From: Callorhinchus milii
Lineage: Eukaryota
NCBI RefSeq assembly: GCF_018977255.1
Contig: NW_024704760.1
Location: 1,860,001-1,924,000 of the forward strand
Reading direction: 5' to 3'
DNA length: 64,000 nt
Shown piece after piece: positions 1-56,685 of this stretch; the first letter of the stretch is position 1; the number at the start of each line of letters is the position of its first letter. The position numbers and the translations under genes were made by a program. Under the pieces are notes generated by a model. That model saw nothing but the letters and a program-made list of their open reading frames with translations. It did not search any database and was not told where the DNA came from.

Positions 1-1
1 C

Positions 2-2030
2 CATGAATGTTGATTGGTACTGAGCAATTGCAGGCTTCCTGTATTAGCTGTAAGACCGACTCTTCAACCATTTCACTGGATTCAGTTCCTTTGCTATTTG
101 AGGCTGTGCAGTAGTATTGGGGACACTGGGCGGTGGAGATGCATTGTATGTCTAGTTTGTTGCTGTGAGAGATCTCTGAAGCTTCAGCCTCTGTCTCTCT
201 GTACCATTTATACCGAATGGGAAGGGATCCACTGATGGACTCACAGGAGATGGAGACATGACCTCCTGAACATGAGTCAGTGAGTGCTGATACAAACCTA
301 ATTACAGGCACAGACACAGACTCTGTGGGGAAAGAAGCAATCAGTCACAGGCCGACAGATTCCAATTTCTGCATCCGATCCCTTTACAGGTCATCGTAGA
401 AGAGAGAAGTCACTTTTCCTCGGAATCGGACTCGACTTATGAGCTGAATATGCGCCGAGTTTACACATTGTGTTAGTGAAGTGCATCAGTCACATTAAAG
501 GGAATGGTTTAACGTACAGTCAGATGTGTGTAGCTTTCTGCAAAGGTTGTATTATCCTGGCTGGACTGACAGCTCACAGTTTTACACATTGAAATAAGAA
601 TCAACAGTCAGGTATCTTACCGTCAGATATGTGTACCTTTACAGCAACCATTGTATCTCTGCCAAACTGATCAATCCCACAGTTATACCATCCTGCATCT
701 CTCATGGTGAGATTCTCCATAGTTACAGTAAATACCCCGTCTCTCTTATCTGTGATTGAGAATCTTCCTCGTTGTCCGTTGACGGCTTTTGTATCAATTA
801 CATCTTCACAACTGGAGCGATAATACCCGCGACACCAATATTTTGTGTGTCCCGAGTACTTCTGTTCATCATATCGACAGTTTATTCTGATCGCTCGTCC
901 CACAACTCCTGTTACTTCAGCTTCTGCCCATAATAGGTCTGAAACCAGAGACAAAACGTCACGAATCAAACGAACCATAACCGCTCAACACAAACACATC
1001 CTTCGGTAAAAGATTCCCACTGTGTACAGACTGGTGCACCACTGCTCTTATCCATACACTGTGATTGGGGTTTAAGCATCGATCACTGAGGCTGGCGCTG
1101 ATGTTATTGCTGTTTGTACTGTATCAGGTCTGGGAAAGAGGAACTGACCACCACACCCGAGGCTGATCTCTGGCGCCCCATCAAATTCTCTTTTCTTTTT
1201 CATCGTTTTCTGTTATTTAGTTTTCCCCCAAAAATATACACATTCAACCGACTTTACAGTGTATCCGGTGGAGCGCTTTGAGGCAGACGTCCCGATGACG
1301 TGATCAGGCGCTATACCGAACGCAAGGATTATTATAATCGTCGTTGGGAAAAATCTGTGAATTTCCCCCAAGGAGTTGAACAAATTCACACCATAAATAC
1401 AGCGACCGTGGGTTACAGGCGTTAATTTGCTCTTTAGACAGTTTTGCAGAAATGAACAACAAATTTTTACATTTCTTCCTGTGTTACACAGGAACAGGAG
1501 GAGACCATTCAGTCCATCCGAGCCTGTTTCGCCCTTCTATTAGATCGTGGCTGATCTGTACCTCATCTCCAAAAAAAGGGTTGATTTTACAATGACGATT
1601 TTTTGTTGTTCTCATTGTATTTGGGACCGATCTCAAACTGGTCAAATCCTGAGAATGTTCAGTGATAGTAACAGCGCTCAGACCAAGGTTTGCAAAGCAA
1701 CGTCTAACTTGTATTTTGTCAAAAAGACTTGAAACGTTCACAAGATGCACACCTCAGGCCGGAGATCAGAGTGTGTCCGTGAGTAACGGGAAGTCATGAA
1801 ACTACCAGTTTTTTTCTTTACCGAAATCTCAATACTGTTCAGCAATTGTTGGAAAATTTTGAGAGAGAAAGAGAGGGAGAGATAGAGAGAGATAGGGAGA
1901 GAAAAGGAAACATTTTTAACAACAGCTTTCAAACTGGCAACCAGTTCAACCATCAGAACATCTGGCTGCTCAGCTCCGGGTGTCACTCACCTGCGAGAGA
2001 AGTGAAGAGAAGAATCAAGCTGATGTCCAT
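2..2030 (-). CDS. Gene A1 (3' end off-window): CD300/MDIR-like receptor, leader + V domain + second Ig domain
   Basis: Leader 2030-1991 (MDISLILLFTSLA, donor GTGAGT); V exon 938-621 (INC..KYWCRGYYRSSC..DAGWYNCG, donor GTAAG); Ig2 exon 322-2 (SVSVPVIRF..SCESISGSLPIRYKW..YYCTASN). All junctions phase 1. Confidence 0.85.
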
Positions 2031-2200
2031 CAGGAGCGAAGAGACCAACGTCTGTTGTGTGGCAGCTCTCATCGCTTCCTACTGAAAAGGCAGCTTGTGT
2101 GTTAAAGGGAAGAGGAAGTCAAGCTCACGAAAGTGCCGTTTCTTTCTATCTTTGGGTTTTAAAAAATGCAGAAAGAAAGAACAAACTTCCTTAAATTAGT

Positions 2201-2526: not shown

Positions 2527-3895
2527 AACAATTTGCAATGACCTGATGAAGATCACTCAACGACCAAGGGTCACCCAAAGTTTGATCCCCTCCCCTGCCA
2601 CCAACACACGTGTGCACACACTAAGACAAGCACACATATTAATATACCTACATAAACATATGCATATACTTACTTAAACAAAGTTAATAATAAGAATCCT
2701 TGCATTTATATACAGTCCCACCCATTTCTGTCAAACTCAATTATGTTGAAATCCCACATATATTGACAACACAGGGAAGTTCTGGTTTCTTCTCTGCGTA
2801 TCATTATGAAAAACATAGTGTCTGTCGACATGCAAATAAATTGCGTCACACTTACAGCCACAAACTCTTTGAGTCCCTGACAGTTTTCAAGACTTTTTTT
2901 TTAATCATGTTAACAGGCCCTTTTCCTCATGTGTGACATGTGAGTGAGTGTGACACATGTTAGGCTTCTAAATAAGATGTGTTGCATGTGCTGATCATAG
3001 TCTATAGTCTATTGTCAGGGTCTATACAATACTGAGGTTGGGTTAGGCACAGGAATAACATAGTGATAAGACGCTATACCAAATGCAAAGATTAGTATTA
3101 TTATTATAAGCTCATGGGTAAAATAATAATAATCCTTGCATTTGATACAGAGCCTTATCACATCCTTGAGACGTCTCAAAGCGCTTCACAGGATACACTG
3201 TAAAGTGAATTGACTGTATGTTTTGTGGGCGAAACGCGGCAGCCAATTGCACACGGCAGCGTCCCACAGGCAGTCGTGGATTGAGTGAGCAAATGATTAT
3301 TATTTAGAAGGGATTGTTACCCCTGGAAAAGTGATCCGCCAATCGATTAAAAGGCTGATATTTAACATTTGATGAAGAAACTGACTCAGAGATGGGAATA
3401 GGGTAAGATATGTTACTTTGGGAGCAGCCGGATGGACATGTGCAAGTACACAGCCATTGATTCAGGTGTCGTTGTATCTTTTTATTATATGGAATTCATA
3501 GAAAAGACATTCAAGGTTTTCATGAACGATTCAGTAGAACAAACATTAATTTTTGTTTAAGAATAATATCAACATTGAGGAATATCGAAGCGGCGGCTGT
3601 GTCTGTTTGGCACAGTTAGTAACATCCTGGAGGGAGCTGCGTTTCCAGAAGTGTCGTCGTCCTTCAGATAAGGACATTAAGCCGAGGTCTCATCTACTTG
3701 TTCAGCTGAACGTCAAAGGCTCTGTGATCTTTCCATTAAGAGAAGACAGTTTCTCTCCGTGTCCTGGTCAACGATTCTCCAGCTATTTACCAGCCGATGC
3801 CTGTGTGTGGGACCTTGATGTGCATGTAATGACTGCTGCGTTGCACACCTCAAAGTAAAGTGCTTTGAGACGTTTTGATAATGAGCCATAATGAG

Positions 3896-4324
3896 CTATA
3901 AACATTGCAAATCCACGTGATCCGGATTTCTCACCGACCAGGTCGGATGCCCAGTGAGGATCTTATGGTGTTGCTCGGGTTCAGCTGAAAAAACAAATAA
4001 TTAATCCAGAGATTTTATTGATGTGACTGTGTATCAAAAGGGCATTTTACTTATCAGTTTACGAGTGTGTTTTATTTTACTGATATTTTACTGATAAACC
4101 TTGGGCAAGTTTCCTTACTCCACACGCCTAATAATAATCCCTCCAAAACTAAAAACAATAATTAAATTGGTCATTTTCAATCTACGACTGTTTGTGGGAC
4201 ATTGCTGTGCGCAATTGGCTGCCGCGTTCGCCCACAAATATACAGTCAATTCACTTTACAGTGTGTTCTGTGAAGCGCTTTGGGACGTCCTCCCGACGTG
4301 AAAAGCGCTATATCAAATGCAAGG

Positions 4325-4357
<33 letters not shown>

Positions 4358-7300
4358 TCTGAATTTCTCAGAAAAAGTACCAACCTCCGACTGCAGCTGT
4401 GTAAAACTTTTTATTTTAAGGATTAATAAGAAAGGATTATTGTTAACTAATTAACGACAAAAACACATAATCCTCACCGTGTCTTTTCTTTGAACAGTAA
4501 ATGGCCGAAATCAGAGAAATAAGCAGGACGGCAAACAAGACCCAGCGTAGCCAGCTCCACAGGGTGTAACTGAGCAAAACCACAGAACAAAACAGTCAGT
4601 CTTAAAAGAGACAGTATCCGCGTGTGCCAAACACCATCATTTTCCTCCGTTCTGACTGTAACCTTAATGCAAGAACGATCAGATATTGGGCTTTGGCTGC
4701 GGATTAGACTTTTGCTGTTGACGTTTTAGAGAAAAGTCTAAATGCAAATTAGAGATCCGAAACTCAACATAACCGGGGTTTATGGACCAGCAATCGTCTA
4801 ATCTGGAGGTCCTACTGTTGGGCTCAGGGATGTCTTCTGTAGGATATTGCTTGAAGGCGTGAGTGATAATCAGGAGAGAGACAATCAGAAGAAGACAGGA
4901 TGTATAAAAGGACACTGAGAGTGCGACACACATGTGGGTTGGAGTTTTGTGAGTTGAGAATAACGTGTGAAGCTTTTGAAAAGTGATGTGTTTGAGGAAA
5001 GAGGATTGAGGCGCTCACTTTCTCCTGACGATTTTTAAGAGAATAATGGAGGAACCGTTGGGAAATATCCAGGGTGACATTTGTGTTCTGTGTGTTGGGC
5101 CCCGAGCCAATCGCCCCGACACGGTTCTCAGTCAAGGTTACAACAACAACAAGTTACATTTGTAAAGCGCTTTTCACGTTGGGAGGATGTCCCAAGGCAC
5201 TGGATAGACAGTGATTTTTAACAACACACACACAAGATGGAGGGTCAGAAATTGTGACTGTGATGTGATAATCATCACTCGTCCATTCCTACCTGTGCTG
5301 TTGACCTTTAGTTGCCATGATGGTGGCTTGTGTGACCATGAAGGAGATGCGTGCAGCTGGAACATGTGCAGTTGGCATTGACTTGGTTGTGATCTTGGGA
5401 CTGGAAAATTCAGTTCCTTTCAAGGGAAAGAACACAATTCAGATTTGCTCAACAACTGCTCAGGAGAAAGCTTTGATACCAAACTGCACGTCAGGCTTGA
5501 GTAAGAAACAACACTTTCTCTGTGATAGTCATGGTGCTGGTCAGCAGGGAGTGTCAGTACTGATGCACTCGCCATTGATTCTCTTAATTTATTGCCACAC
5601 CATCTCCGGTCGGGCCTTCAGGCTCTCTGTCCCCACGGTTTGGATTTCCATCTGACAGTCCCTTCGCCTCACTCCCTCCCTTGAGTCTTTCAAGGCACGT
5701 CTCAAGACCCTCCTCTTCGATCACGCCTTTGGTCACCCTCCTACCCTCTTCCCTCCCTGCCCTCCACACTCCCTTATCCCAACCTTCAGCTCAACCTTCC
5801 CTGACTGTTCAGTGCCTTGGGACATCCTCCCTGTCATGGACTGGTTAGTGGTCACCCATTTAGTGCAGCGGACAAAATAGAGTGAGTTTCTTCAGTGCGG
5901 ACAATTGCTCAGTTGATTCGCTATCTTCTGGGTAAAACCAGCAGCTATTTTGTGCACAGCAATGTCCCACAAGCAGCCGTGACATTTAATTGTATTTGGG
6001 GATTGTTGGCCAGGACACCAGGAGAGGTTCCCTGCTTTAAATTCAGTCAGTTCTCATATAGGCAAATAAATATACAGTAGGTGTATTGAGCAATTCCAGT
6101 GTCTTTATAAAGGACTTTCCATGAATGTTGATTGGTACTGAGCAATTGCAGGCTTCCTGTATTAGCTGTAAGACCGACTCTTCAACCATTTCACTGGATT
6201 CAGTTCCTTTGCTATTTGAGGCTGTGCAGTAGTATTGGGGACACTGGGAGGTGGAGGTACATTGTATGTCTAGTTTGTTGCTGTGAGAGATCTCTGAAGC
6301 TTCAGCCTCTGTCTGTCTGTACCATTTATACCGAATGGGAAGGGATCCACTGATGGACTCACAGGAGATGGAGACATGACCTCCTGAACATGAGTCAGTG
6401 AGTGCTGATACAAACCTAATTACAGGCACAGACACAGACTCTGTGGGGAAAGAAGCAATCAGTCACAGGCCGACAGATTCCAATTTCTGCATCCGATCCC
6501 TTTACAGGTCATCGTAGAAGAGAGAAGTCACTTTTCCTCGGAATCGGACTCGACTTATGAGCTGAATATGCGCCGAGTTTACACATTGTGTTAGTGAAGT
6601 GCATCAGTCACATTAAAGGGAATGGTTTAACGTACAGTCAGATGTGTGTAGCTTTCTGCAAAGGTTGTATTATCCTGGCTGGACTCACAGCTCACAGTTT
6701 TACACATTGAAATAAGAATCAACAGTCAGGTATCTTACCGTCAGATATGTGTACCTTTACAGCAACCATTGTATCTCTGCCAAACTGATCAATCCCACAG
6801 TTATACCATCCTGCATCTCTCATGGTGAGATTCTCCATAGTTACAGTAAATACCCCGTCTCTCTTATCTGTGATTGAGAATCTTCCTCGTTGTCCGTTGA
6901 CGGCTTTTGTATCAATTACATCTTCACAACTGGAGAGATAATACCCGCGACACCAATATTTTGTGTGTCCCGAGTACTTCTGTTCATCATATCGACAGTT
7001 TATTCTGATCGCTCGTCCCACAACTCCTGTTACTTCAGCTTCTGCCCATAATAGGTCTGAAACCAGAGACAAAACGTCACGAATCAAACGAACCATAACC
7101 GCTCAACACAAACACATCCTTCGGTAAAAGATTCCCACTGTGTACAGACTGGTGCACCACTGCTCTTATCCATACACTGTGATTGGGGTTTAAGCATCGA
7201 TCACTGAGGCTGGCGCTGATGTTATTGCTGTTTGTACTGTATCAGGTCTGGGAAAGAGGAACTGACCACCACACCCGAGGCTGATCTCTGGCGCCCCATC

Positions 7301-8172
7301 AAATTCTCTTTTCTTTTTCATCGTTTTCTGTTATTTAGTTTTCCCCAAAAAATATACACATTCAACCGACTTTACAGTGTATCCGGTGGAGCGCTTTGAG
7401 GCAGACGTCCCGATGACGTGATCAGGCGCTATACCGAACGCAAGGATTATTATAATCGTCGTTGGGAAAAATCTGTGAATTTCCCCCAAGGAGTTGAACA
7501 AATTCACACCATAAATACAGCGACCGTGGGTTACAGGCGTTAATTTGCTCTTTAGACAGTTTTGCAGAAATGAACAACAAATTTTTACATTTCTTCCTGT
7601 GTTACACAGGAACAGGAGGAGACCATTCAGTCCATCCGAGCCTGTTTCGCCCTTCTATTAGATCGTGGCTGATCTGTACCTCATCTCCAAAAACAAGGTT
7701 GATTTTATGACGATTTTTTGTTGTTCTCCCTTTTCAGTATTGTACATTAATTTTCATTGTATTTGGGACCGATCTCAAACTGGTCAAATCCTGAGAATGT
7801 TCAGTGATAGTAACAGCGCTCAGACCAAGGTTTGCAAAGCAACGTCTAACTTGTATTTTGTCAAAAAGACTTGAAACGTTCACAAGATGCACACCTCAGG
7901 CCGGAGATCAGAGTGTGTCCGTGAGTAACGGGAAGTCATGAAACTACCAGTTTTTTTCTTTACCGAAATCTCAATACTGTTCAGCAATTGTTGGAAAATT
8001 TTGAGAGAGAAAGAGAGGGAGAGATAGAGAGAGATAGGGAGAGAAAAGGAAACATTTTTAACAACAGCTTTCAAACTGGCAACCAGTTCAACCATCAGAA
8101 CATCTGGCTGCTCAGCTCCGGGTGTCACTCACCTGCGAGAGAAGAGAAGAGAAGAATCAAGCTGATGTCCAT
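3896..8172 (-). CDS. Gene A2: activating-type V+Ig2 receptor with Arg in the TM and a short Tyr-free tail; Ig2 donor is non-canonical
   Basis: Exons: leader 8172-8133; V 7056-6739; Ig2 6440-6120 (followed by GAAAGT rather than GTAAGT); Thr-rich stalk 5416-5293 (phase 1-2); TM 4569-4478 (YTLWSWLRWVLFAVLLISLISAIYCSKKRH, phase 2-1); tail 3984-3896 (AEPEQHHKILTG..QCL*, less certain). Phases are consistent throughout. Confidence 0.75.
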
Positions 8173-8486
8173 CAGGAGCGAAGAGACCAACGTCTGTTGT
8201 GTGGCAGCTCTCAGCGCTTCCTACTGAGAAGGCAGCTTGTGGGTTAAAGCGAAGAGGAAGTCAAGCTCACGAAAGCGCTGTTTCTTTCTATCTTTGGGTT
8301 TTAAAAAACTAGAAAGAATAAACTTCCTTAAGAATTTGCAATGATCTGACGTAGATCACACAATGAGCAAGTGTCACCCAAGGATTGAGATAAAGTTTGA
8401 TACCCTCCCCTGCCACCAACATACGTGTGCACATATTAAGACAAGCGCACACATTAATATCCACACATACACTGACATAAACATGT

Positions 8487-11400
8487 CCCCATTCTGACTC
8501 TTCTTCTCTGTTCAGCGTCAGGTAAGAACGGGGAATATTTAAACAGGGCAGCGTTTTAATGTACTGTAAAGTGAACTGACTGTATGTGCACAGCAGTGTC
8601 CCACATTGGATTGAGGGACCACATTTGTATTATTACTATAATTTTTCAGGGGATTATTACCCCTGCAAAAGCGCTCTAACCGCTGCACTACAGGCTGCCA
8701 TTGTAGGGACCAACCACCACAACAACAACAACTTGCATTTGTAGAGCGCCCTTCACGCAGGGCAGTGTCTCGGAGCACTTGGTCCCTCAATGTTCGGTCC
8801 TCGTTTAATCAGAGGTCAAGAGGCAGAATCAGTCGGCTTCGAGCACCGAGGTTTCCAAATGTATTTACACTTCATACTGCATTTAGCAATTACAATCCGA
8901 TACCTGATCCGCTGTCTCTTTAGTTTCAGACACATTACGGGCGACACAGTCAGTAACAGGAGTTGTGGGACGAGCGATCACAATAGACTGTCACTATCAG
9001 AAACAGTGGTACCGGAACAACAAGAAATATTGGTGTTGGGGATATTATCGCGACAGTTGTCAGGTTGTAATTGATACAAAAGCCAACAATGGACGAAGAG
9101 GAAGATTCTCAATCACAGATAACAGAGACGGGGTATTTACTGTAACTATGGAGAATCTCACCACGGGAGATGCAGGATGGTATAACTGTGGGATTGAGAT
9201 TCCTGTCTTTGATCCAATGTTTGGTGTAGAGCTACACGTCTCTGAGGGTAAGCTATCTGAGCTACTGATTCTTATTTTAATGTGTAAAACTCTTATATGT
9301 GAGAGTAATCAGGAAGATCCAACGTCTACAATACAATAAGATATACAATTCCAGGCACAGGGCGAAACCTTGGGCAAGTTTCCTTACTCCACACAGAGCC
9401 TAATAATAATCCCTCCAAAAACAAAACAATAATAAATTGGTCATTTTCAATCTACGACTGTTTCTGGGACATTGCTGTGCGCAATTGGCTGCTGCATTCG
9501 CCCACAAATATACAGTCAATTCACTTTGCAGTGTATTCTGTGAAGCGCTTTGGGACGTCCTCCCTACGTGAAAAGCGCTATATCAAATGCAAGGATTATT
9601 ATTATTATTATACAGTGTCTTTCACAGGGAGAGCACTAGTCAGTGTTGGTTGGGCACTCGAGCTGGGGGTGGGAGCCAAGGGGTGGGGGGAAGGTGACCA
9701 AAGAACGGTCAAAGAGGGTATGTTGTGAGACGTATGGTATGTTTTGCTGTAACGGTTGACAAGATGACAGTACTTTAGTTTCAGATATTTATTCTTATGA
9801 ACATTTTGGGTTTAGATCGTGATGGCTTTAGCTGTATCTGGGAGTTGATTGAGGAATGGACACTGTGGGATTTTAGCAGAAATAAACTCGACTTGTCAGC
9901 GCAGGGAGGAAGTGAAGTTATTTTTATGAGCCTTGAAACTTTCCAACCGCACAGAAATGATTAATGGTCCCATTGCACCCACAGCGGGTGTTGTAGCACC
10001 TTCTGTGTCCCCACTCGCTCAGCTCTCTGAAGCAGAAGTAAAACACAAACTGATGGTGAAGTGCAACAGCCGGACCAGTGAGTGAGAGCTGCGGCTCCTG
10101 ACATCAGCCCACATCCTGCCTAACATTCAGCTCAGTGTGAGGGGCCATGCAAGGTGATAGTCACAAGGCAAGGCCGGTGTGATAGTGTATCAGCTCTGTG
10201 TCCGTCTGGCTCAGTCGGTCGCACTCCTGCCTCTGAGTTATGAACAATGTGGGTTCAAGCCCCACATCAGGACTTGGAGCACAGTCGGGGCTGGTTGTCA
10301 AATGCGGAGCTGGGGGAACACTGCACTATCAGAGCCGCTGTCATTTGGATGAGATGTTAAACTGATGTCCCTTCTCCCTTACAGATGGTGCTATTAGAAA
10401 AGAGAAGGGAATTTCTCTTCTCGCACATGCAAGGATTATTATTCGTGTGTGTGGGGGGGGGGGAAGGAAGGCGGAGGGGAGGGACGAGAGTTTACAGATT
10501 GCATTAAATTAATGTTCTTAATGATTGAAGTATTTAAGGATAAATGTGACCCATCAGAATGAGCAACAGTGACCTTCACTTTCAGATATTCAGCTTTCTC
10601 AAGCCCAGGTGTAATAATAATAATAATCATTGCATTTGATACAGAGCCTCATCACGTCATTGAGACGTCTTAAAGCGCTTCACAGGATATACTGTAAAGC
10701 GAATTGACTGTATATTTTGTGGGCGAAATGCGGCAGCCTATTGCGCACAGCAGTGTCCCACAAACACTCGTGGATTAAATGGTCAAATTATTAATATTAT
10801 TGGTGGAGTCTGCAATTTTGAATCCATCTGTTGCAGATAATAAATATAACGATCTTTCAGAGAGCCAGACTTTGCGTATCATCTAAACAATTGTTTCTTT
10901 CCCCACAGAGCCCGTGTCTGTGCCTGTACTGAGATTTTTATCAGCACCCACTGCCTCGTGTTCAGGAGGTTATGTCTCCATCTCCTGTGAGTCCATCAGT
11001 GGATCCCTTCCCATTCGGTATAAATGGATGAGAAAGTCGAAGGGTAGAACTTCAGAGATCTCTCACAGCAACAAACTAGACATACAATGTACCTCCACCT
11101 CCCAGTGTCCCCAATGCTACTGCGTAGCCTCAAATAGCAAAGGACAACAATCCAGTGAAACGGTTGCAGTCTCAGCCTTACAATCTGCGCAGACAGTCTG
11201 CAGTTACTCGGTACACATCGAAAGTGCTGGTACGGTTTACTCTCACTCGTACAGCATTGCTTTTCATTGCTCAGCGCCTGAACATTCAGACGTTCTGTAC
11301 ACATTCCGCATTGTTCACAGGATTCAAATTCCTTCGACTCGAAATAGATCTGAGACTGAACAATGAAAATTGGGGTTGAAGATTGCCTTATTCCCAAACA

Positions 11401-14333
11401 ATAAACACTATTCCTTGCATTTGATATTACGTCTTATCACATCTTTGAGACGTCTCAAAGCGATTCAGAGAACATACAGAATATAGAGACTGTATATTTT
11501 GTGGGCGAAACACGGCAGCCAATTGCGCACAGCAATGTTATACAAACAGTCGTTTATTGAGTGACCAAATTATTATTGTTAAACAAGAAAACACAACACC
11601 AGCACCGCAGACAGGGACATGGAGCAGACCAGAGTTCACTGGGTCAATATTCAGGAACGGACTGAGTTTAGGAATAACATCAATTTGTCGCCCACCTTAG
11701 CAGCAAAACCACAATGATCTGTTCTCCTCTCAGCTTCAGTGATTTACAGACCTCTTAAACCCTGACCTTATTTTATTTTGCCATTCATTAAAGAAACACA
11801 CAGAAAAGGCTACTGGCACTGTATCCAATACAAACAGTGTACAAACGACATATTTCTTCTCTGCGGCAATGTAACTCGAGGCTTTTTATTCTGTGTTTCA
11901 GGAAATCAGATTATTTGTGACCCACTCACAACGATACAGACCCCAATTACTGTGTACACAACAGCAGAGCCTTCAAGTGCAATGAGATTAACTGACAGAA
12001 CTTCACAAGTCCCCAGTAACAGTCATCCTGAGTGGAGGTTTGGTGGAACATTTCTTGAAGCAAACGTGGGGTAAAAATTGCAACTTGTGATAATTAGCAC
12101 ATCACAGCTGCAATTTTCTGACACTCCATCTTGTGTGTGTGTGTGTGTTGGTGTGTGTGTCAGTGTCTATGTGTTACCTTGACTGAGAGTAGTGTTGTGT
12201 TTCATGGCTCAGGCCAAACACACATAACACAAATTTCTCGCTCTAAAGTTCCGCTGATATTCTCCCCCCCAAAAGAAAGCAAGAGACGCCTTTCTTGTTG
12301 TTGTTCTTCAGGGAAAAGCTGACGTACCTCTACATTGCTGTGGCTGCGCTGGTGCTGCTCATTGTGGGACTCGTTTCATCTTATTGTTTCTACAGAAAGA
12401 TGACGAAAGTCGACGGTACGTTCAAAACTTTAATTTGCACCGATACGTGCGAGTGATCCCAGTGAAGCCCTTTCTCTCATCTTCCTCTCCACAATCCTCA
12501 ACTGTTCTAAACACAAGAAATGTCTGTTGGCCTGGCGCAGGGGGTAGCACTCTCCCTCGCCTCTGAGTCGGAAGGTTGTGGGTTCAAGCCCCGTGTCAGG
12601 ACTTTGAATCACACAGTCTAAAATGATGCTCCAAGGCAGCGCTGGGGCGGGGGGTGTTGCATCGTCAGAGGCGCCATCTTTCAGATGAGACGTTAAACTG
12701 AGGTCCTGTCTGCCTGATCAGGTGGATGTTAAAGTTCCAGCGGCACTATTCTCTCTCCCAGTGTCCTGGCCAACAATCCCCCAGATTGGGGGAGCCAGGG
12801 GGAGGGGAAGGTGACCAAAGGCCTTCAGCCGAGACCTGAACATAGGAAGAGAGGGGAGCGAGGGGAAGGGAGTGAGGAAGGGAGTTCCAGAGCCTCGGGG
12901 CGCAGTGGCTGAAGGTACGGCCATCGAGGATGGAGCGGAGGACTCGGGGGACGAGGAGGAGGCCAGACTCGGAGGAACGAAGGCAACGGGCACTGTTTTG
13001 AGGAGAGAGGAGATCAGAGAGGTCGGGGGGTGCAGAGGATATACGGTATCTGACAGAATATTAAATTCTTCCACCTTTGGTATTTCCAGGTAAAGAGAGG
13101 ACAGACTCACAGGATCAAGAAAACGACATTGAAGCTGTTCAGGTGAGAATGTTAAAGTAAATACTAATTAAAGGTAACCTCAACTTATTTTTTGCACGTC
13201 CCTTCATAAGGCTTTGAGTTGAAGAAGAATAATATAATAATCTTGCATTTGATATAATAATACTGCTTACATTTGATATAGTGCCTTATCAGGTCTTCTA
13301 GACTTTTCAAAGCTATTCTCAGAATATACTGTAAAGTGAATTGACCGTATGTTTTGGTGGGAAACACAACAGCCAATTGCGCACAGCCGTGTCCCACAAA
13401 AATCGTGGATTAAGTGACCAAATTATTATTATTATTTTTTTACTGTATTCAAAATGTCTTCACACTCCCTTACATTAGGTCGAGACAAGTCTCACGCAGG
13501 TTGTATTTAAACCTTCATAAAATTATAGTGTATTTCCCAATGCACTATGAATATTAGTTGACATTAACTATTTTAATATTGAATATTAGAGGATAAAGCC
13601 AACACATTGTGTGCCCTTAATAACCCCGTTTTGTTTTCCAGGTTACTAGAGAAGGAGACAAAGACGTGGTATATGCGAGTATTGTACATCACCACTGGTC
13701 CCAGACCGAGAAGACACAGGGAGAGGCGAGTGTACAAACGAGACTTGGATTTCTGAACGCAGTTAGAGTCTGTTATAAACAATAATAATAATCATCCTTT
13801 CTTTTGATACAGCGCCTTATCACATCTTCGAGACGTCTCAAAGTGCTTCACAGAAACAGACCCACAAACAGTCGGGGATTGAAGTGACCGATTTATCATT
13901 TTTTTTCTTGAGGGATTATTATTAGGCTTGTGGAGAAACGAAACTTGCCCAAGGCTTCACTCTGCCGGGAAGCAAACCCAGATACTCTCGCTTGCAAAGG
14001 CGAGTGCTCTAACCGCTGAGCTAAATGCGACTATTTCTAACACCTGTCGTTTAATAGCTACAGTATATCCTGTAAAGTGCTTTGAGACTTCTCGAAGACG
14101 TGACAAATATAAGCGTTATTAGTATTATTATTTGAACTTAAGAACCCAAATTACTGGTTGGTTGGCGTTCGGATTAAAAGATTGTGAATGTGTGTATAAC
14201 TTTGTTGATCAGTAATGTGTTTTTATTTCAGGACGTTTATTTAAACATTAAAAAGAAGCCGGCGGCCACAGCAGGAAACCACAAAGTCTCACCAGAGAGC
14301 AAGTCCCCTATATACAGCACCATTAAGTTCTAG
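8487..14333 (+). pseudogene. Gene B: full inhibitory V+Ig2 receptor body lacking an in-frame start codon and its own promoter in this orientation
   Basis: Truncated leader 8487-8521 (PILTLLLCSAS; the ATG at 8483 is out of frame, ATG TCC CCA TTC TGA); V 8930-9247; Ig2 10909-11229; stalk 11902-12037; TM 12312-12415 (YLYIAVAALVLLIVGLVSSYCFY); tail 13090-13142, 13642-13725 (VVYASI, GC donor), 14232-14333 (DVYLNI, PIYSTI*). Downstream exons are open and in phase. Confidence 0.75.
12527..12790 (+). mobile_element. SacSINE1/DeuSINE-like SINE 5' and central part (related pieces at 10194-10420, 19975-20230, 22860-23138, 37470-37809, 46255-46600)
   Basis: GGTAGCACTCT..CGCCTCTGAGTCGGAAGGTTGTGGGTTCAAGCCCC..GATGAGACGTTAAACTGAGG..CAGGTGGATGTTAAAG..GTGTCCTGGCCAA resembles the Deu-domain SINEs of sharks as recalled; not database-checked. 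Confidence 0.65.
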
Positions 14334-15007
14334 TCAACAAGAAAGAAGGAAGAAGCTGATCACATTTGCTTTAGCCGTCAATCATCACGGACGTGTCAAA
14401 CGTTCACATTGAGTCTGTACCAGGTTTACACTGTTGCTCACATTCACTCTATTGCCCTGTATCACGTTTATGCTGCATATTTAGCAATCTACCGCTGTGC
14501 AAATTATTCCCTTCCCACATACGTACATGGAAATTTCCCTGTGTCAGGAATGGAACGCGCACTCTCTCCCTCCCTGGAGGGACTCACCTGTGTACCTAAT
14601 TCTGGAGAGTTTCAGGTGCAGGTTGGCAAGAGCCAAGGCTTGGAGAACCCAGAGTGAGCTTTGGGGTACTTGTTAGAGTTTAACCAGCTCAAACGACTAA
14701 AACCGCTTAGATTGCCTTTGAGAGCGCTGCCTGGCAAGCTTCCCGCTACTTGCCCAGCCTGGATCACCCTACAGGTCAAGGGCTTTGGCTTTGCAGGGTT
14801 AACAATACAATATACGCTTATACAGCACCTTTCACATTATGAGGATATCCCAAAGTGTTTGAAGTGCTTGACAGAAGTTGATTGGGAGAAATATCTATTC
14901 CAGGTGACTGGTCTATCTTAAGTTCTGCCAATGAGCCAGACTGGCTAGTCAGTCACAGCAAACCATCGTTTATTATGTACGCTGTTAAATCTTCATTTCG
15001 CTCTCAC

Positions 15008-15013
15008 AATAAA
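15008..15013 (+). promoter_or_regulatory. Probable polyadenylation signal of gene B
   Basis: AATAAA about 675 nt after the stop codon at 14333 and 37 nt before the inner end of the right inverted-repeat arm. Confidence 0.5.
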
Positions 15014-15592
15014 AATGTAGTGTTAGATTTTATGCTGCAATGCGGACTATTTCTGCTTCAGAGAGCTGAGCGAGTGGGGACACAGAAGGTGCTACAACAC
15101 CCGCTGTGGGTGCAATGGGACCATTAATCATTTCTGTGCGGTTGGAAAGTTTCAAGGCTCATAAAAATAACTTCACTTCCTCCCTGCGCTGACAAGTCGA
15201 GTTTATTTCTGTTAAAATCCCACAGTGTCCATTCCTCAATCAACTCCCAGATACAGCTAAAGCCATCACGATCTAAACCCAAAATGTTCATAAGAATAAA
15301 TATCTGAAACTAAAGTACTGTCATCTTGTCAACCGTTACAGCAAAACATACCATACGTCTCACAACATACCCTCTTTGACCGTTCTTTGGTCACCTTCCC
15401 CCCACCCCTTGGCTCCCACCCCCAGCTCGAGTGCCCAACCAACACTGACTAGTGCTCCCCATGTGAAAGACACTGTAAAATTGTTAATCTTATTGTATTG
15501 TAGACGTTGGATCTTCCTGATTACTCTCACATATAAGAGTTTAACACATTAAAATAAGAATCAGATAAGAATCAGTAGCTCAGATAGCTTAC

Positions 15593-16358
15593 CCTCAAGG
15601 ACGTGTAGCTTTATAGCAAACATTGGATCATTGATAGACATCTCAATCCCACAGTTATACCATCCTGCATCTCCCGTGGTGAGATTCTCCATAGTTACAG
15701 TAAATATCCCGTCTCTGTTATCTGTGATTGAGAATCTTCCTCGTCGTCCATTGTTGGCTTTTGTATCAATTACAACCTGACAACTGTCGCGATAATATCC
15801 CCAACACCAATATTTCTTGTTGTTCCGGTACCACTGTTTCTGATAGTGACAGTTTATTGTGATCGCTCGTCCCACAACTCCTGTTACTGGATGTGTCGCC
15901 CGTAATGTGTCTGAAACTAAAGAGACAGCGTATCAGGTATCGGATTGTAATTGCTAAATGCAGTATGAAGTGTAAATACATTTGGAAACCTCGGTGCTCG
16001 AAGCCGACTGATTCTGCCTCTTGACCTCTGAGTAAACGAGGACCGAACATTGAGGGACCAAGTGCTCCGAGACACTACCCTGCGTGAAGGGCGCTCTACA
16101 AATGCAAGTTGTTGTTGTGGTGGTGGTTGGTCCCTACAATGGCGGCCTGTAGTGCAGTGGTTAGAGCGCTTTTGCAGGGGTAATAATCCCCTGAAAAATT
16201 ATAGTAATAATACAAATGTGGTCCCTCAATCCAATGTGGGTCACTGCTGTACACATACAGTCAGTTCACTTTACAGTACTTTAAAACGCTGCCCTGTTTA
16301 AATATTCCCCGTTCTTACCTGACGCTGAACAGAGAAGAAGAGTCAGAATGGGGATCAT
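15593..16358 (-). CDS. Gene C: orphan intact leader + V exon (paralogue of the B 5' end); no own downstream exons found on this strand
   Basis: Leader 16358-16319 (MIPILTLLLCSAS, GTAAG donor); V exon 15910-15593 (AITINCHYQKQWYRNNKKYWCWGYYRDSC..GIEMSINDPMF). Similarity to B stops at 15051, inside intron 2. Confidence 0.8.
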
Positions 16359-19300
16359 TTTCTCGGGTGAAAGCGATGCCTGGTCTGATCTCGCGGTGGC
16401 TGAGCACTCGTTTGAGGGCAGTGGATTTTATTCCTCTCTGTGGGGCAGGAAATTACGTTCAAATGAATGCACGTTAGCACAGAACCCAGTCAACAGGATG
16501 TCACGAGTTGGATTCCCTGTAGCTGTTGTGCTCAGATGCTCACAGAGAGAAATAAAATAAATAAATGAAATAAAATAAAATGAATAATGTAGTGATCAGG
16601 CGCTATATCAAATACAAGGATTATTATTATCATTACTACGAAGCTCATGGGTAAAATAATAATAATCCTTGCATTTGATGCAGCGCCTTATCACATCTTT
16701 GAGACGTCTCAAAGCGCTTCACAGGATACACTGTAAAGTGGAGTGACTGTGTAACTTGTAGGAGCAATCGTTACATGTTGTGTGTTTCCCCCTCTGCGTC
16801 ATCTTTGTCAAAGCCAGTGGCCAATTGTGGAGTACAGAAGTTTTAGGCAGAACCAATTTTCAGATTGCGGACAGAGACAGAATGAGCCTTTTGGATACCT
16901 CAGTTCTGCCTCTTTTGCTACACATGAGCCCTCGTGAGGATGAAGCAAGTTACTACAATTTGGGATAATTAATAATAATAATAATCCTTGCATTTGGTAT
17001 ACACTTTACGGTATATTCTGTGAAGCACTTTGAGACATCTCAACGACGTGATAAGGCTTTATGTCAAATGCAAGGATTATTATTTATTACAGCGCCTTAT
17101 CACGTCGTTGAGATGTCTCAAAGCGCTTCACAGTATATATCGCGCAGTGGAGTGACTGTGTATTTTGTGAGTGAAACGCGGATTCCATTTGTGCACAGCA
17201 GTGTCCCACAAACCGTCGCAGATTGAGTGAAAACCCCCCAAGTTTTTTTGAACAAAAAACACCACACTCCACAAAAATAAAGCACACGCAAAAACGTTTT
17301 GATGGGTTCGCGGTGAGCTTATCATTATCCCACCTCTCCCAAGGCAAGGATTGATCCCAACCTAGTCATGCCGGGATCTATACAGCCGCGTCTGCAAACC
17401 AAAAGTTTCTGGGTTTCCTGCGATCCTGGGGAACAACACAAAAGTAGATCGACAAAGAGTCTCACTCACATCGAGAATTTGGGGAATTTCTGGGATTTCC
17501 ACGTGTCGGTGGGGTTGTGTGGAATTCTCAGCTTGGTTTTGGAGACTCTTAAGCACGGTCATGGGTTTCCGCACGTGTTAGCCGTGTGTCTGACTTGGCT
17601 TCTGGCTTCCAAACAAAGTGAAAAGAGTTCTCTCCCCACTCTGTACACAATGCACAACACAGGAACTCTGACATTGACACCCTCCCTGTCTGGACACACT
17701 GGGTTAATTCTGTTCCCCTTTCGTATAATGCACTCGATCTGGAGGAGGTCTTATTATACCCACCATTTCTGGTTTGCAATAGTTGCTCCTCAGATCGAAA
17801 GTTTATTTGCACGTTCGGTTCTGTTCCAACCGGTTGGACTATTAGCCCCAAAAATAGAAAATAAAGGGACAATTTAAACTCTTATCGAAAACATGACGGG
17901 AGGATAAAGGGACTCAATCGCCATGAGCTGTCCGTGGTGCTGGTCCTGATCAAGCAATTCACTGTGTGGCTGTTCGGGCTGTTGGCAACAAAGACTACAG
18001 ACGAGACAGACTCTCAGACACTACTTTCACTTCTCATAGAACCATGTCACCGCCTCCTGTCCCCCCGCACCAACCAACCAGTATCCCTACAGTGTGAAAC
18101 CATCAGCTTGTTGTGTGAACCGCTGCCAGTGGCGGACTCGTTTGACTCGTTCGAGCATCAACTGTGCTAATGTAAGACTATTATTCCTTACCGCAAGGGG
18201 AGTGGGGCCAACGGTCGGCGCGGAGGTCACTTGCGATAATTGCAAATGTTCTTTTTGAGTCTAGTGTGAGTCACGAAACTACTGGTGGGTCTGGAAGTCA
18301 AGCGAGCAGCCGAAACCGAGTGACGGCTCTTGGAACCTTGAAGTTAGAGCCAGGTGGAAAAGCAGAACCTCGTGATATTGAGAAGGGAATGCTTGCACTC
18401 AGCTTTTTCCAGTGTGTGTTAACGATGACCAAATAAGCAGTGAGTTGTACGGCAATCGAGCCAGACACTCGCTGTTTTAGCGTTGGTGCTAAACAGTGAG
18501 GCTGCCTGACCGCCATCTCACCTCCATCCCCGGGAGGACGTCAAGAAGGGAAGAGACAGGTTCTGATATACGTTTTTTATTTACCATCGATTTGCAAAGA
18601 AGTTAATGCTTAACGGGCAGAATCAATAATAATAATGATAATCCTCGCATTTGATACAGCGCCTCATCACGTCTTCGAGACGTCTCAAAGCGCTTCACAG
18701 GATATACTGTCAAGTGAATTGACTGTATATTTTGTGGGCGAAACGAGGCAGCCAATTGCGCACAGCAGCGTCCCCACAAACGGTCGTGGATTGAAGTGAC
18801 CACCTTACTATTATGATTATTAAAATAATACGATTAATTTAAAAATGCAGCACGCTAAATAAAGGAAGTTCCCGCGGACCAGAGAGAGAAGTGCGGTGAA
18901 TCGGAAAAACATGAACTCCTCATGATAGCACAGCAGCACCACGTGATATCCTTTGTGGTAAAGTAATCAGCACGGTGTTGGGCACAGTTTTATTTGCCTT
19001 TCAGAGTCGTTCGGAAGGAGAAACCTTGGTAGTCACTTTTCTACAAAGAACCGGGTTTGGAAACTTCCAATTAACTTTTAGAATCAGCGAATCTCTCTCC
19101 AGTTTCAGTCCAGGTAAGAAGTGGTTGATTTTTAAAGAAGAAAAAACTTCATGTGAACTAATAGCCATATAGTTTGTGGACACCTATTTGGACAGAGACT
19201 GTTCAGAAAATTTACGGTACAGAAATAATTTGCGTGGGATTGAAACCCGTTTGTTTAAATCCGGTTTGAACGACATTTTGGATTCAGTTTCTCAGCCTCT

Positions 19301-20316
19301 GTGCATTCGTAGCTTAGACGGTGAGACATTGAGGTGAGTCAGTGCTCGCAATCGTGGAGTCTTGAAGTGAGAGTGTTGCTTAGACCACTCGCCTCGCAGG
19401 CGAGAGGACCTGGGTTCGATTATAATAAGCCCTCAAAGAAAAATTGGTCACTTAATCCACGTCTGTTTGAAGGGCACTGCTGTGCGCAAATTGTCTGCTG
19501 CATTTGCCAACAAGACACGCAGAGGCAAGAAGTTTGACAGCAGTTAGGCAGTGCACCATCTTGAAAAAGTGCCGGTAATTTCAATGTCTCAAAACCACAA
19601 AGGAACCTTGCACTCAACATGAACGGAGTAGAATGGGGTAGTGACTGCACAGAGCCAGACACTGCCACTATAGACATGACTCACCACCTACTTTTAAGTC
19701 AGCAATACTTGCGTTTCCCCCTTTTCTCTTTCCGAAGCCTTTAATCCAAAACAGAGAGTCGTTTTCCGAGAAAACACCGCAGCTCGGGATGGTGATGGGG
19801 GAGATTAACAGAAATCAATCTGCGTCTCCTCTGACAGACTATCCAGTAAAGATACACCCGGGTACACAATAGAAGTTTGCACGTTCCTCATTGATTTGTG
19901 CTGAGTTTAAACTGGGTCTGCCTGCATGTTTGTATGAAGGAATCCTCTGGGTAACTATTTTTGTTGTCCGTTGAGATCAAGGTCCCGTCCGCCTGCTCAG
20001 GTGGGCGTTAAAGATCCCATGGCACGATTCGAAAAGAGAAGGGAACCTCTCTCTCTCTCTCCCTGGGCCCTAAACAAACAATCCCCCAAATAAAATTAAT
20101 CACTTACTTCATGGCTGCTTGTGGGACGTTGCTGTGCGCAAATTGGCTGAAAAATACACAGTCACCCCACTTTGCAGCAAATCATACGAAGCATTTTGAT
20201 ATCCTCCTGATGTGAAAGGCGCTGTACCAAGAGCAAGGATTATTTATTACTAGTTAAAAAAAAATCTCTGGTAGAGATAATTAGATGTTTTTGTTCTCTT
20301 CTCTCGCAGAAGTGCC

Positions 20317-22153
20317 ATGATGTTCGCTCTGATATTTTTGATGGCATTCCAGCCGGGTAAGAAAAGACATCTTGGGAGCAATAAATTAATCAGTGGCATT
20401 AGAATTTAGAGGCAGCTGTAGGATTTGTTCTTTGCTCAGCCGGGGTGTCTGACACGTGCGGAAACCCATCACCGTTGCTCCAAACCCAACTCAGAGTTCC
20501 ACGTCTCCTCACCGACACGTGGAAATCCTAGAGATAGATTGGTGGAATGGAATGCGCGCTCTCTCGCTCTCTCCCTGGAGGGACGCATGCGTCCTGCTTA
20601 GCCAATTCCGGCGAGTATTAGTCGCAGGTTGGCAAGTGCGCAGTCACTCCACCTCACAGCAAGATACCGTGACGGGCTTTCGGACGACCTGCCGACGTGA
20701 AAGGCAGCGCGACCAACTTATTATTATTATAATGTTTAGCGCCGGTCACAGTCACCGAGGTTCTGCCTCAGCGACTGATACAAATTTGATCTCAGCACGT
20801 GATATGACATGACATGACATGACGAGTCCTCCCTTAAGTTTCAGGCCAAATGCGGGGAGTGAAGACCGTAACGGGAGTGGTGGGGCGCGGGGTTGTCGTA
20901 GAGTGTCACTACGAGACGGAAAAGTACCGGCAACATGAGAAATACTGGTGCCGAGGGTCCAATCACATCACCTGCACGGTGTTGGCTCGGACAAGACAAC
21001 AGCCCAGACACCAGGGCAGGGTGTCAATCGCAGACAACATCGCAGACGGAGTGTTGTCCGTAGCTATGGAGAAACTACAGGCTGACGACACAGGCCAGTA
21101 CTGGTGTGGCATATACACGGTCGGATTCAACCCGCATTTCCCTGTTACCGTACAAGTAGATGACGGTAATGTTGACCAAGCTCCTTCCTCCTTTAATTGA
21201 TAATGATCAGTAATAATTTGGTCACGACTGCTTGCGGGGACACTGCCGTGCGCAATTGGCTCCCCCGCGTTTCACCCACAAAATACACACGGTCGATTCG
21301 CTTGGCAGTATATTCTTCGAAGCGCTTTGAGACGCCTCCAAGACGCGCTAAGGCGCTAATATCAAATGCACGGATAATTATTATAATTATAATTATTATT
21401 GTTATTATTAAATGCTCCGAGACGCTACCACCCGCCTGACGGGTGCTATGTTGTTGTGGTGTTTCAAAAGTACACATTATAGTTATAAATGTAATGCTAG
21501 TTATTACTAATTAATATTACTAATGATTACATATATAGCATATCTAATCATTGCGCCCACGAAATACCGAGTCAATTCACTTTACAGTACGTGCCCTGAA
21601 GCCCTTTGAGACGTCTCGAAGACGTGATAAGGGGCTGTATCAAACGCAAGGGTTATTACTATAGAGTATAATAATTTTTGCTATTGTTGATGCAACATTA
21701 ATGCGTTAATGCCTTTCCTTAAGGGACACGGTCAGCTTTACCCTGTGTTTCTCTCCTGCAGTGGCTGTCTCTAAGCCGATCCTCCGGTTTCTGAGTCCGT
21801 ACAGGGCCTCTTGTTCCGGGCAAACGGTGTCAATCTCTTGCGAGTCCGTCGATGGCTCCCTTCCCATCGACTACTCCTGGTACCAGAAATCAGTGAACAC
21901 CACAGACCTGCGGGTATCGGACAGTGGGAACCTCACGCTCCGGTGCGGAAATATCGGGCACGGACACGGGTATTACTGCAGCGCCCGGAATGGGCCGGGC
22001 AGCCAATCCAGCGATGCTCTCCAAGTGTCCGTCTTGAAGACGGGGGAAGAGAACTGCGTCTATGTCGTGCAAATCCACTCCGAAGGTACGACTTACTCTG
22101 GTTCACCCGTTCAACTGAAGGCACTGGAAATTATAACAACTAAGTAACTAAGC

Positions 22154-29740: not shown

Positions 29741-30154
29741 CAGGTTTTTATGGCAAACACAGGTTTTTATGGCAAACACAGGTTTTTATGGCAAACACAG
29801 GTTTTTATGGCAAACACAGGTTTTTATGGCAAACACAGGTTTTTATGGCAAACACAGGTTTTTATGGCAAACACAGGTTTTTATGGCAAACACAGGTTTT
29901 TATGGCAAACACAGGTTTTTATGGCAAACACAGGTTTTTATGGCAAACACAGGTTTTTATGGCAAACACAGGTTTTTATGGCAAACACAGGTTTTTATGG
30001 CAAACACAGGTTTTTATGGCAAACACAGGTTTTTATGGCAAACACAGGTTTTTATGGCAAACACAGGTTTTGATGGCAAACACAGGTTTTTATGGCAAAC
30101 ACAGGTTTTGACGGCAAACACAGGTTTTTATGGCAAACACAGGTTTTGACGGCA
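29741..30154 (+). repeat. 19-bp minisatellite (CAGGTTTTTATGGCAAACA) x ~21.8
   Basis: Perfect head-to-tail units without spacers; variant units (TTTGATGGC, TTTGACGGC) only at the 3' end. Confidence 0.95.
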
Positions 30155-56633: not shown

Positions 56634-56685
56634 ATGGCACAGAAAATGGGTCGAATCGCTCTGTTTATTCTAACTTCAGTATCGG
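56634..56685 (+). pseudogene. Dead copy of the gene H leader exon upstream of gene I (second copy at 62829-62880 upstream of J)
   Basis: MAQKMGRIALFILTSVS vs H MAQKMGLIALFILTSVS; donor GTAAG changed to GGAAG; flanking homology to 48930-49410 with a ~280 bp deletion. Confidence 0.75.

Follow-up and report, generated by a model that had tools for sequence, protein, structure and literature searches.

Recurrent inversions by homologous recombination between inverted repeats are known, examples being the intron 1 and intron 22 inversions of human F8 and inverted segmental duplications. Staggered-break inversions carry inversion-linked duplications of up to about 1.9 kb, frequently at a single breakpoint (Ranz et al. 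2007, PMC1885836). The locus described here lies in a gap-free 64-kb window of Callorhinchus milii (elephant shark)—the window being the whole stretch of 64,000 nucleotides that was analyzed, and the frame in which all positions are given. It shares several features with the staggered-break inversions: unique genic DNA occurs as inverted copies at the two ends of an inverted segment; a single breakpoint region is duplicated; the duplicated piece of 1.3 kb is inside the size range reported; the junctions are without long homology; and one breakpoint was apparently reused. However, at about 6.5 kb the elephant-shark segment is tiny and is contained within one gene, so that the event would split the gene from its own start codon; in addition, the animal is a cartilaginous fish and not a Drosophila, with an ancestral state that is a reconstruction. 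As in F8-type recurrent inversions, a segment whose orientation decides whether a gene is intact lies between inverted repeats of high identity, but the elephant-shark arms are short, 1.8 to 2.5% diverged, and unhomogenized, and one orientation alone is seen, in two assemblies at most. The likeness to bacterial invertible switches or shufflons and to inversional V(D)J joining is in geometry alone—a body would acquire its 5′ part through inversion—whereas the locus is without a site-specific recombinase, short recombination sites, RSS, or evidence of two states. Literature searches on elephant-shark CD300/MDIR loci and on the provenance of assembly IMCB_Cmil_1.0 returned nothing relevant.

The window is part of a multigene cluster of MDIR/CD300/pIgR-like immune receptors, of which one member is ITIM-tailed and another has a charged transmembrane (TM) segment. 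The N-terminal V-set domain of the split gene is of CD300/pIgR type; it contains four cysteines (..IDCHY..KYWCWG..DSCQ..YNCG), matches the Pfam V-set with an E-value of 1.2e-13, and has as best solved PDB matches pIgR (E 1.5e-38), CD300f (1.2e-19), and CD300a (6.4e-17). The closest proteins outside Callorhinchus are about 50% identical—MDIR5 of the skate Rostroraja eglanteria at 50% identity with an E-value of 1.5e-106—and full-length relatives show 35 to 41% identity across 95 to 99% of the query. Many of the shark and ray relatives are named “polymeric immunoglobulin receptor-like” or “CMRF35-like.” The TM segment of the receptor body (LTYLYIAVAALVLLIVGLVSSYCFY) is uncharged and is combined with a cytoplasmic ITIM, as in the inhibitory form: VVYASI matches the consensus (S/I/V/L)xYxx(I/V/L), and two more YxxI motifs are noncanonical. 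Like the MDIRs of skate and zebrafish and the mammalian CD300, pIgR, and TREM receptors, the protein has a V-set with an extra C–C′ cysteine pair; unlike in those receptors, the elephant-shark copy is split and, as now arranged, is unable to encode the receptor. The features of the locus are as follows.

8484..8487: novel junction J1 (between 8485 and 8486), at which the A0/A1/A2 array ends and abuts arm B at its outer end, shared bases at most 1 to 2 bp
8486..10040, plus strand: arm B, with leader remnant, intron 1, V exon, and first part of intron 2, running into the gene body
8486..8521, plus strand: leader exon remnant minus its first 4 bases (ATGA)
8930..9247, plus strand: V exon V(B), CD300/pIgR-type V-set with four cysteines
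9354..9611, plus strand: SINE of 258 bp in arm B only (about 9350–9607 in the alignment of the arms), 93 to 96% identical to other copies in the window
10041..15047, plus strand: unique spacer of 5,007 bp, with the remaining intron 2, six exons, and the 3′ UTR of the inhibitory receptor
10909..11229, plus strand: Ig2 exon (Ig_3 / Ig_C17orf99-like), 88% DNA identity to the A1/A2 Ig2 exons
11902..12037, plus strand: stalk exon
12312..12415, plus strand: transmembrane exon, uncharged TM segment
13090..14333, plus strand: three cytoplasmic exons (13090–13142, 13642–13731, and 14232–14333) with VVYASI (canonical ITIM), DVYLNI, and PIYSTI
15008..15013, plus strand: AATAAA, the first past the stop codon
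15045..15050: novel junction J3 (between 15047 and 15048), at which the body's 3′ flank meets arm C at its inner end, 2 to 3 bp (TA) of possible microhomology
15048..16354, minus strand: arm C, the inverted copy, with leader from base 5, intron 1, V exon, and part of intron 2
15593..15910, minus strand: V exon V(C), intact
16319..16358, minus strand: complete leader exon with ATG at 16358–16356, 40 nt, phase 1
16359..16580, minus strand: unique DNA upstream of the C ATG, presumably 5′ UTR and promoter, with a block of SINEs beyond it; the old model P0092 starts here

The arms appear in the repeat search as three blocks, namely 8486–9275 with 15565–16354 (790 nt, 97%), 9265–9350 with 15479–15564 (86 nt, 97%), and 9607–10040 with 15048–15481 (434 nt, 99%). 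Global alignment joins them into a single continuous pair that is broken only by the arm B SINE and by an 11-bp tandem duplication found in arm C only, just after the V exon. The arms are 97.5% identical, with 32 substitutions in 1,295 aligned bases—a similarity far beyond chance. They consist of nontransposon genic DNA, and their other matches in the window are limited to paralogous V exons (83%) and SINE pieces. The SINE was inserted once the arms had formed, and the private SINE together with the 11-bp indel indicates that the arms evolve separately. Their introns are 1.8% diverged, near the 2.2 to 2.3% of the A1/A2 direct repeats; because intron divergence is like that of these neighboring tandem repeats, the arms are not being homogenized. 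Two tracts of intron 2, of 245 bp (9631–9875) and 161 bp (9877–10037), are identical between the arms.

Much of this anatomy had been outlined in a preliminary description of the locus, which placed the arms, each with leader, V, and part of intron 2, at 8487–10037 and 15051–16353; the alignment confirms them at 8486–10040 and 15048–16354. The rest of an inhibitory receptor (Ig2, stalk, TM, and ITIM exons) does lie between the arms as claimed, although over 5,007 and not 5,013 bp, and the AATAAA assigned to 15008 is the first after the stop. The body-joined arm B was rightly said to be without an in-frame ATG—its leader frame is preceded by the TGA at 8473—and arm C to keep an ATG and upstream DNA while pointing in the opposite direction without a body, with leader and V(C) intact. 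The placement of A1 and A2 on the minus strand holds as well.

Arm B is continuous with the body in the alignment, with no novel junction between them. The B exons carry AG/GT splice sites throughout and form a single open frame of 386 codons, with the stop codon of the receptor body at 14331–14333. At the other end, the leader frame reads TGA-H-K-H-V-P-I-L, with the in-frame TGA 12 nt upstream, and an ATG at 8483 is out of frame and runs into a stop after four codons. By its sequence, B is a full reading frame with all splice sites that is without a start codon, a signal-peptide start, and a promoter of its own; the ATG leader is on the opposite strand, 6.3 kb off. Judged from the sequence, the present haplotype cannot give rise to the inhibitory receptor in membrane-bound form.

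Arm C is likewise continuous with its own upstream DNA in the alignment, with no novel junction there. Its leader (MIPILTLLLCSAS(G)) has the same length and phase as the A2 leader (8172–8133), with 24 of 40 bases identical in register, and hence the C ATG is at the homologous start of the family. The upstream DNA of C and that of A2 align locally with a score no better than shuffles; the C promoter is therefore presumed from the position of the ATG and from an old gene model. Past V(C), the frame runs into a stop after 10 codons of intron 2, and the minus strand has an AATAAA (at 15202) a further 390 nt on. On this reading of the exons, C is a presumed promoter, ATG, leader, and V exon, but with no exons to splice to.

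The V exons of the two arms differ at 15 nt, 14 of them nonsynonymous, and 10 of these fall in the F–G loop and G strand. With 4.7% divergence against 1.8% in the introns, the difference is significant (Fisher p = 0.007). Derived nonsynonymous changes are present in the V exons of both arms; V(C) has five polarized derived changes, and all five are nonsynonymous. The divergent patch of 42 bp has no exact gene-conversion donor among A0, A1, A2, and LOC103182453. In the old assembly, the arm C V exon begins with QS like that of arm B, where the window has HP, and two or three amino-acid positions of V(C) differ between the two. Had both halves been dead ever since the rearrangement, the excess divergence of the V exons and the derived changes on both arms would not be expected, and the clustering of the differences in the F–G loop is unexplained under the reading favored here.

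That reading is that an inversion of approximately 6.5 kb with a duplicated breakpoint probably separated the inhibitory receptor gene from its promoter and start codon. The broader statement—a real rearrangement and a null allele—is very probable, and whether a single staggered-break event rather than two steps was at work is evenly balanced. The ancestral, uninverted arrangement is one that we infer rather than see: the gene would have been on the minus strand in tandem with A0, A1, and A2, in the order promoter, ATG-leader, V, Ig2, stalk, TM, and ITIM tail. One break would have occurred just past the poly(A) site of the gene, adjoining the A2 upstream region; the second would have been staggered, spanning the 1.3 kb between leader-exon base 5 and a point in intron 2. 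The stretch between the two breaks would have been rejoined in reverse, and fill-in of the stagger, presumably as described by Ranz et al. (2007, PMC1885836), would have left the leader–V–intron 2 piece inverted at both ends. A single staggered-break inversion makes arms and flip in one step, and hence no prior inverted duplication is required; the arms would be a by-product of the inversion and no device. The novel junctions are two only, with 1 to 3 bp shared and without long homology. Reversing the flip yields four co-oriented tandem paralogues—A0, A1, A2, and the split gene—in support of the preliminary description, which had noted that flipping the middle rebuilds a complete minus-strand gene co-oriented with A1/A2; of the options it listed, the inversion null allele or fixed pseudogene fits the data best. 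The rearrangement is of an ordinary gene-killing kind, and a programmed switch is not indicated. Two observations sit less easily with a simple single event. The inversion breakpoint is within 1 to 2 bp of the end of the A tandem array, which ends at the outer edge of arm B, and this coincidence is not predicted by it and is unexplained; a continuation of the A-array unit (window 2650–3060) was sought in 8400–21000, and only SINE fragments matched. In addition, the plus orientation of B would also fit a gene that was natively on the plus strand. A larger inversion spanning the whole A array was considered and rejected: with it, the orphan promoter would lie beyond the array rather than beside the body. 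The locus would provide a clean, base-resolved vertebrate case in which an inversion has doubled its own breakpoint and thereby divided a gene in two, a body lacking a start and an orphan promoter–leader–V unit, and would show one route by which paired activating/inhibitory receptor clusters lose and reshuffle members.

The same end structure would result from two steps, in which an inverted leader–V–intron 2 copy was inserted downstream of an intact minus-strand gene and later recombination between the arms flipped the 5-kb middle, possibly as a polymorphism. The identical intron 2 tracts are consistent with this, as is the QS start of the old-assembly arm C V exon, which could stem from inter-arm gene conversion but may also be an artifact of collapsed arms in the old draft assembly. 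Tract lengths of 245 and 161 bp are near those permitting homologous exchange in mammals. However, two events are needed where one suffices, an inverted partial copy is required exactly at the 3′ end of the gene, the arms are unhomogenized, and both assemblies have the same state, which makes a two-step origin unlikely. Under such an origin, the germline would have two interconvertible alleles, of which the null one is present here and the intact one in other haplotypes.

Compatible with the favored staggered-break inversion, the orphan half could itself be functional, the C promoter driving either a secreted single-V mRNA or a read-through RNA with a 1.3-kb hairpin formed by the arms. The ATG and the leader are intact, as are the splice sites of intron 1 and the frame of V(C); the intron 2 stop and the minus-strand AATAAA follow, and the old-assembly model XP_007897803.1 comprises the C upstream DNA, the leader, and V(C) and terminates at that stop. 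The exclusively nonsynonymous derived changes of V(C) and its residue differences from the old assembly point the same way, but the counts are too small to prove selection. Moreover, XP_007897803.1 was built with a wrong frame and a cryptic acceptor, and no protein-coding gene is called over window 8200–18172 in the current gene calls. Function of the orphan is considered quite improbable. The predicted secreted product consists of the signal peptide, V(C), and GKLSELLILI before the stop.

Returning to the inverted arms, a rare germline flip-back by homologous recombination between them is conceivable and could in principle restore the gene. Frequent exchange would keep the arms near identical; instead, the introns are 1.8% diverged, and SINE and indel are private, and so exchange is rare at most. 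A re-invertible germline polymorphism, toggling between null and intact by such rare exchange, appears very unlikely. The crossover point would then decide between V(B), V(C), and a chimera—a logic already laid out in the preliminary description and sound as such—and selection on both V exons would explain the nonsynonymous F–G loop excess on both arms. In a weaker variant of this reading, the C half may now be a gene for a secreted V-only decoy. The locus would gain importance only with both orientations segregating among elephant sharks, in which case the arms would amount to a natural pair of on/off alleles of an inhibitory receptor.

The plus orientation of B can also be read as native, the 5′ part and promoter having been copied in inverted orientation to the 3′ side as C, and a later rearrangement at the array edge having removed the promoter and ATG of B, with the body never inverted. 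B does share its direction with most family members on both sides in the cluster, and the arm boundary is the A-array boundary, as though the array edge had cut B. This course needs at least two events, and since tandem duplication makes no new outer-edge junction, the boundary coincidence would still be unexplained; a native plus-strand gene is hardly probable. It would yield the same null gene.

An assembly artifact—the middle misoriented between near-identical repeats, or a false inverted copy made by a fold-back chimeric read—is highly improbable. Inverted repeats of 1.3 kb are able to mislead assemblers; however, the 32 substitutions, the 11-bp indel, and the SINE separate the arms, so that arm B is no fold-back copy of arm C, and the window is gapless. 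The linkage of V(B) to the body and the truncated C unit are reproduced by the old-assembly gene models, of which XP_007897802.1 joins V(B), an exon crossing the 10040/10041 boundary, Ig2, and TM. Both assemblies agree on the present orientation, these being two assemblies at most that may come from the same animal. Misassembly, which had been kept open as an option, is therefore unlikely given the divergence of the arms and the B–body and C–upstream joins shown independently by the older models.

Least probable is a programmed or somatic shufflon-like switch that would activate the receptor in a subset of leukocytes and select V(B), V(C), or a chimera: geometry alone suggests it, in that a flip restores the gene and the crossover site selects the V exon, and V(B) and V(C) differ chiefly in the ligand-facing F–G loop, but its sites would be diverged 1.3-kb repeats instead of short specific ones, one arm holds a 258-bp SINE, a scan found no RSS-like heptamer/nonamer pair, the 64-kb window has no recombinase or transposase ORF of at least 130 aa (none of the 10 non-Ig ORFs scanned, out of the 20 ORFs of that length, matched any Pfam family), and records hold no full-length expressed product. 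For the latter, about 15 billion database sequences were queried by homology and for exact copies of the two hypothetical 387-aa proteins, and no protein with the C leader linked to the body was retrieved. The suggestion of such a switch is thus not upheld, and to our knowledge no vertebrate switch system of this kind is known.

With regard to annotation, the split receptor carries a warning, as three different wrong gene models were built at this locus. The “MTS” first exon of XP_007897802.1 is absent from the window, and in the Ensembl models V(B) shares the strand of LOC103182453, a plus-strand gene, and V(C) that of the A-type V exons.

The window belongs to Callorhinchus milii scaffold MU249850.1 (GCA_018977255.1; record coordinate = window + 1,860,000), has 0 gaps over its whole 64,000 nt, and holds a V-set receptor gene cluster. 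By homology search, the closest named relatives are skate MDIR5 and shark and ray proteins named "polymeric immunoglobulin receptor-like" or "CMRF35-like"; the closest solved structures are pIgR and CD300f/CD300a. The Pfam domains are a V-set and then a second domain of Ig_3 / Ig_C17orf99 type. Next to the tandem minus-strand paralogues A0, A1, and A2 lies a pair of inverted arms, of which arm B is joined to a gene body and arm C is not; at least seven plus-strand V-bearing units lie beyond this locus, from 20.8 kb onward.

Features of the array and the inverted arms
939-622, minus strand: V exon of A1
7057-6740, minus strand: V exon of A2
8486-10040, plus strand: arm B
15048-16354, minus strand: arm C

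Repeat search and alignment bear out the inverted repeat of the preliminary description: either arm features the leader, intron 1, a 318-nt V exon, and the beginning of intron 2. The arms differ by 32 substitutions in 1,295 aligned bases, and a 258-bp SINE is private to arm B, an 11-bp tandem duplication to arm C. The 5,007-bp spacer holds the rest of an inhibitory receptor, as had been proposed: six exons, namely Ig2 (the second Ig-domain exon), stalk, TM, and three cytoplasmic exons. Together with arm B, these feature canonical splice sites throughout and a 386-codon open frame ending at 14333, the first AATAAA past this stop being at 15008. In its tail, this B gene has a single canonical ITIM, VVYASI, along with two YxxI motifs; its TM is uncharged. 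Arm B begins at leader-exon base 5 and reads TGA-H-K-H-V-P-I-L in frame, so the start codon is indeed absent, and arm C, pointing the other way, extends outward to an intact ATGA and then unique DNA, again as described. With its 40 nt and phase 1, the C leader (MIPILTLLLCSAS) is just like that of A2 (MDISLILLFSSLA, ATG at 8172). Because the two match in length and phase, with 24/40 bases identical in register, the ATG of C is the homologous start codon of the family.

The rearrangement features two novel junctions only, 8485/8486 and 15047/15048, with 1-3 shared bases apiece; continuity is unbroken from arm B into the body and from arm C into its upstream DNA. Once the flip is undone, a normal ~6.3 kb minus-strand gene results, in tandem with A2, A1, and A0. 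A single inversion with one plain break past the poly(A) site and one staggered break, 1.3 kb wide and reaching from leader base 5 into intron 2, would yield exactly the observed structure. The staggered-break model was put forward for many Drosophila inversions bordered by inverted duplications of unique DNA, the duplications measuring up to ~1.9 kb and often affecting one breakpoint region only (Ranz et al., PMC1885836). A two-step route—an inverted partial duplication first, then homologous recombination between the arms—would reach the same final structure but requires one more event, strangely placed.

With a period of 6.1-6.4 kb and units that are 96-99% identical, the A0/A1/A2 array stops on its right side within 1-2 bp of the outer arm B boundary. 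When window 8328-8486 is compared with 2525-2660 and with DNA left of the window (L001), the A1/A2 upstream homology extends to 8484-8486, the exact start of arm B, whereas the junctions of A0 with A1 and of A1 with A2 run on into the following unit; hence, the array ends just where the inversion has its breakpoint. The simplest reading of this coincidence is that a fragile site or breakpoint was reused, the alternative being one complex replication-based event; "breakpoint recycling" was reported by Ranz et al. (PMC1885836). Array units and arms are similarly diverged, which would fit events of like age.

Among the readings offered in the preliminary description, the inversion null allele is the supported one: the body is startless, and the ATG sits on the opposite-strand arm. 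A recombinational switch is not supported. As the preliminary description reasoned, inversion by way of the arms would make the gene whole again, and a crossover within the longest identical inter-arm tracts (245 and 161 bp, both within intron 2) would give a restored gene with V(C), the V exon of arm C; as homologous recombination substrate, these tracts are marginal. Against a switch, the window scan found no RSS-like sites (V(D)J-type recombination signals), ten non-Ig ORFs scanned from the 20 of 130 aa or more in the window gave no Pfam match and no recombinase or transposase, and homology searches and an exact look-up found no full-length or C-leader-to-Ig2 protein. Frequently exchanging arms, such as those of sex-chromosome palindromes and inverted segmental duplications, stay near-identical. 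Unlike these, the arms here are not near-identical, with introns diverged by 1.8% (17/941), about equal to the 2.2-2.3% of the A1/A2 direct repeats. Rebuilding of the gene by an inter-arm flip is a possibility, above which nothing found raises it. The kind of event is already known, the present instance appears undescribed in the literature searched, and its significance is modest unless population data reveal both orientations.

Mis-assembly is unlikely: the divergence of the arms and the insertions private to each show that arm B is no fold-back copy of arm C, and older-assembly models share the orientation. XP_007897802.1 comprises V(B), the V exon of arm B, at 100% identity, Ig2, TM, and a cryptic exon (9954-10076) that spans the arm/body junction and carries the allele of arm B. 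XP_007897803.1 comprises C upstream DNA and leader (16440-16321, wrong frame) and the 3' part of V(C), and continues into intron 2 to a stop made by the 11-bp duplication. In Ensembl model A0A4W3K2A1, V(B) lies on the same strand as LOC103182453, a plus-strand gene at window -20293 to -15295 and thus ~24 kb upstream of V(B); the Ensembl model A0A4W3JJ10 runs on the minus strand from 16993 through V(C) and an A-type V to 4799. Since these NCBI and Ensembl models map onto both halves accordingly, the older assembly agrees with the window in its parts and in their relative orientation. The amino-acid differences from the window are small (N/Y, R/Q, T/R, HP/QS) and suggest another haplotype or mistakes in the old draft. 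In arm C, over window 15593-15910 and 16321-16440, the older models read QS where the window has HP, Y in place of N in WYNCG, and Q in place of R upstream, but V(B) shows no difference; these changes could be allelic variation, inter-arm conversion, or draft-assembly collapse of both arms. Current gene calls place no protein-coding gene over window 8200-18172.

Of the 15 positions at which V(B) and V(C) differ, 14 are non-synonymous changes, and divergence is higher in the V exons, at 4.7%, than in the introns, at 1.8% (Fisher p = 0.007). Ten differences fall within 42 bp (9201-9242; arm C 15598-15639) coding for the F-G loop and G strand, and outside this patch the V exon is diverged by 1.8%. 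Polarised with A0/A1/A2 as outgroups, six are derived in B and five in C, with four ambiguous; none of the local paralogues could have donated the patch exactly. Possible causes are selection that has acted on the two V exons since the split, clustered mutation, or conversion from an unseen donor. The C reading frame consists of a signal peptide, V(C), 10 residues, and a stop, with a minus-strand AATAAA 390 nt beyond. A secreted V-only product is a possible prediction, as is a hairpin RNA upon read-through from C into arm B.

A2 (3896-8172, minus strand; NCBI model P0085) has an Arg within its TM, its short tail lacks Tyr motifs, and it looks like an activating receptor. At the DNA level it matches the ITIM-bearing B gene at 83% identity in the V exon and 88% in the Ig2 exon, so that A2 and B resemble an activating receptor paired with an inhibitory one. 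NCBI model P0001 (669 aa; window 1-2200 plus L001) joins A1 to the adjacent A0 unit into a V-Ig2-V-Ig2 protein; this is either a modular protein that the animal really makes or an annotation that reads through. LOC103182453 (P0032; L002) is an A-type ITIM receptor convergent with the minus-strand A array, with a G-alpha gene further left; plus-strand family members surround the minus-strand block. Two plus-strand V exons 1 kb apart (43018-43296 and 44019-44336) possibly form one two-V (pIgR-like) gene. The direct repeat 56307-57805 / 62502-64000 (98.8% identity; V-like exons 57504-57734 and 63699-63929) is another recent tandem duplication of the cluster, clipped by the window end. Dozens of copies of a tRNA-derived SINE bearing an (ATT)n tail lie in the window (e.g. 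9354-9611, 2273-2525, 4096-4350, and 41355-41614), the young ones 93-96% alike; one copy entered arm B later than arm formation. A tandem array of 19-bp period, self-matching at offsets that are multiples of 19, occupies 29741-30156.
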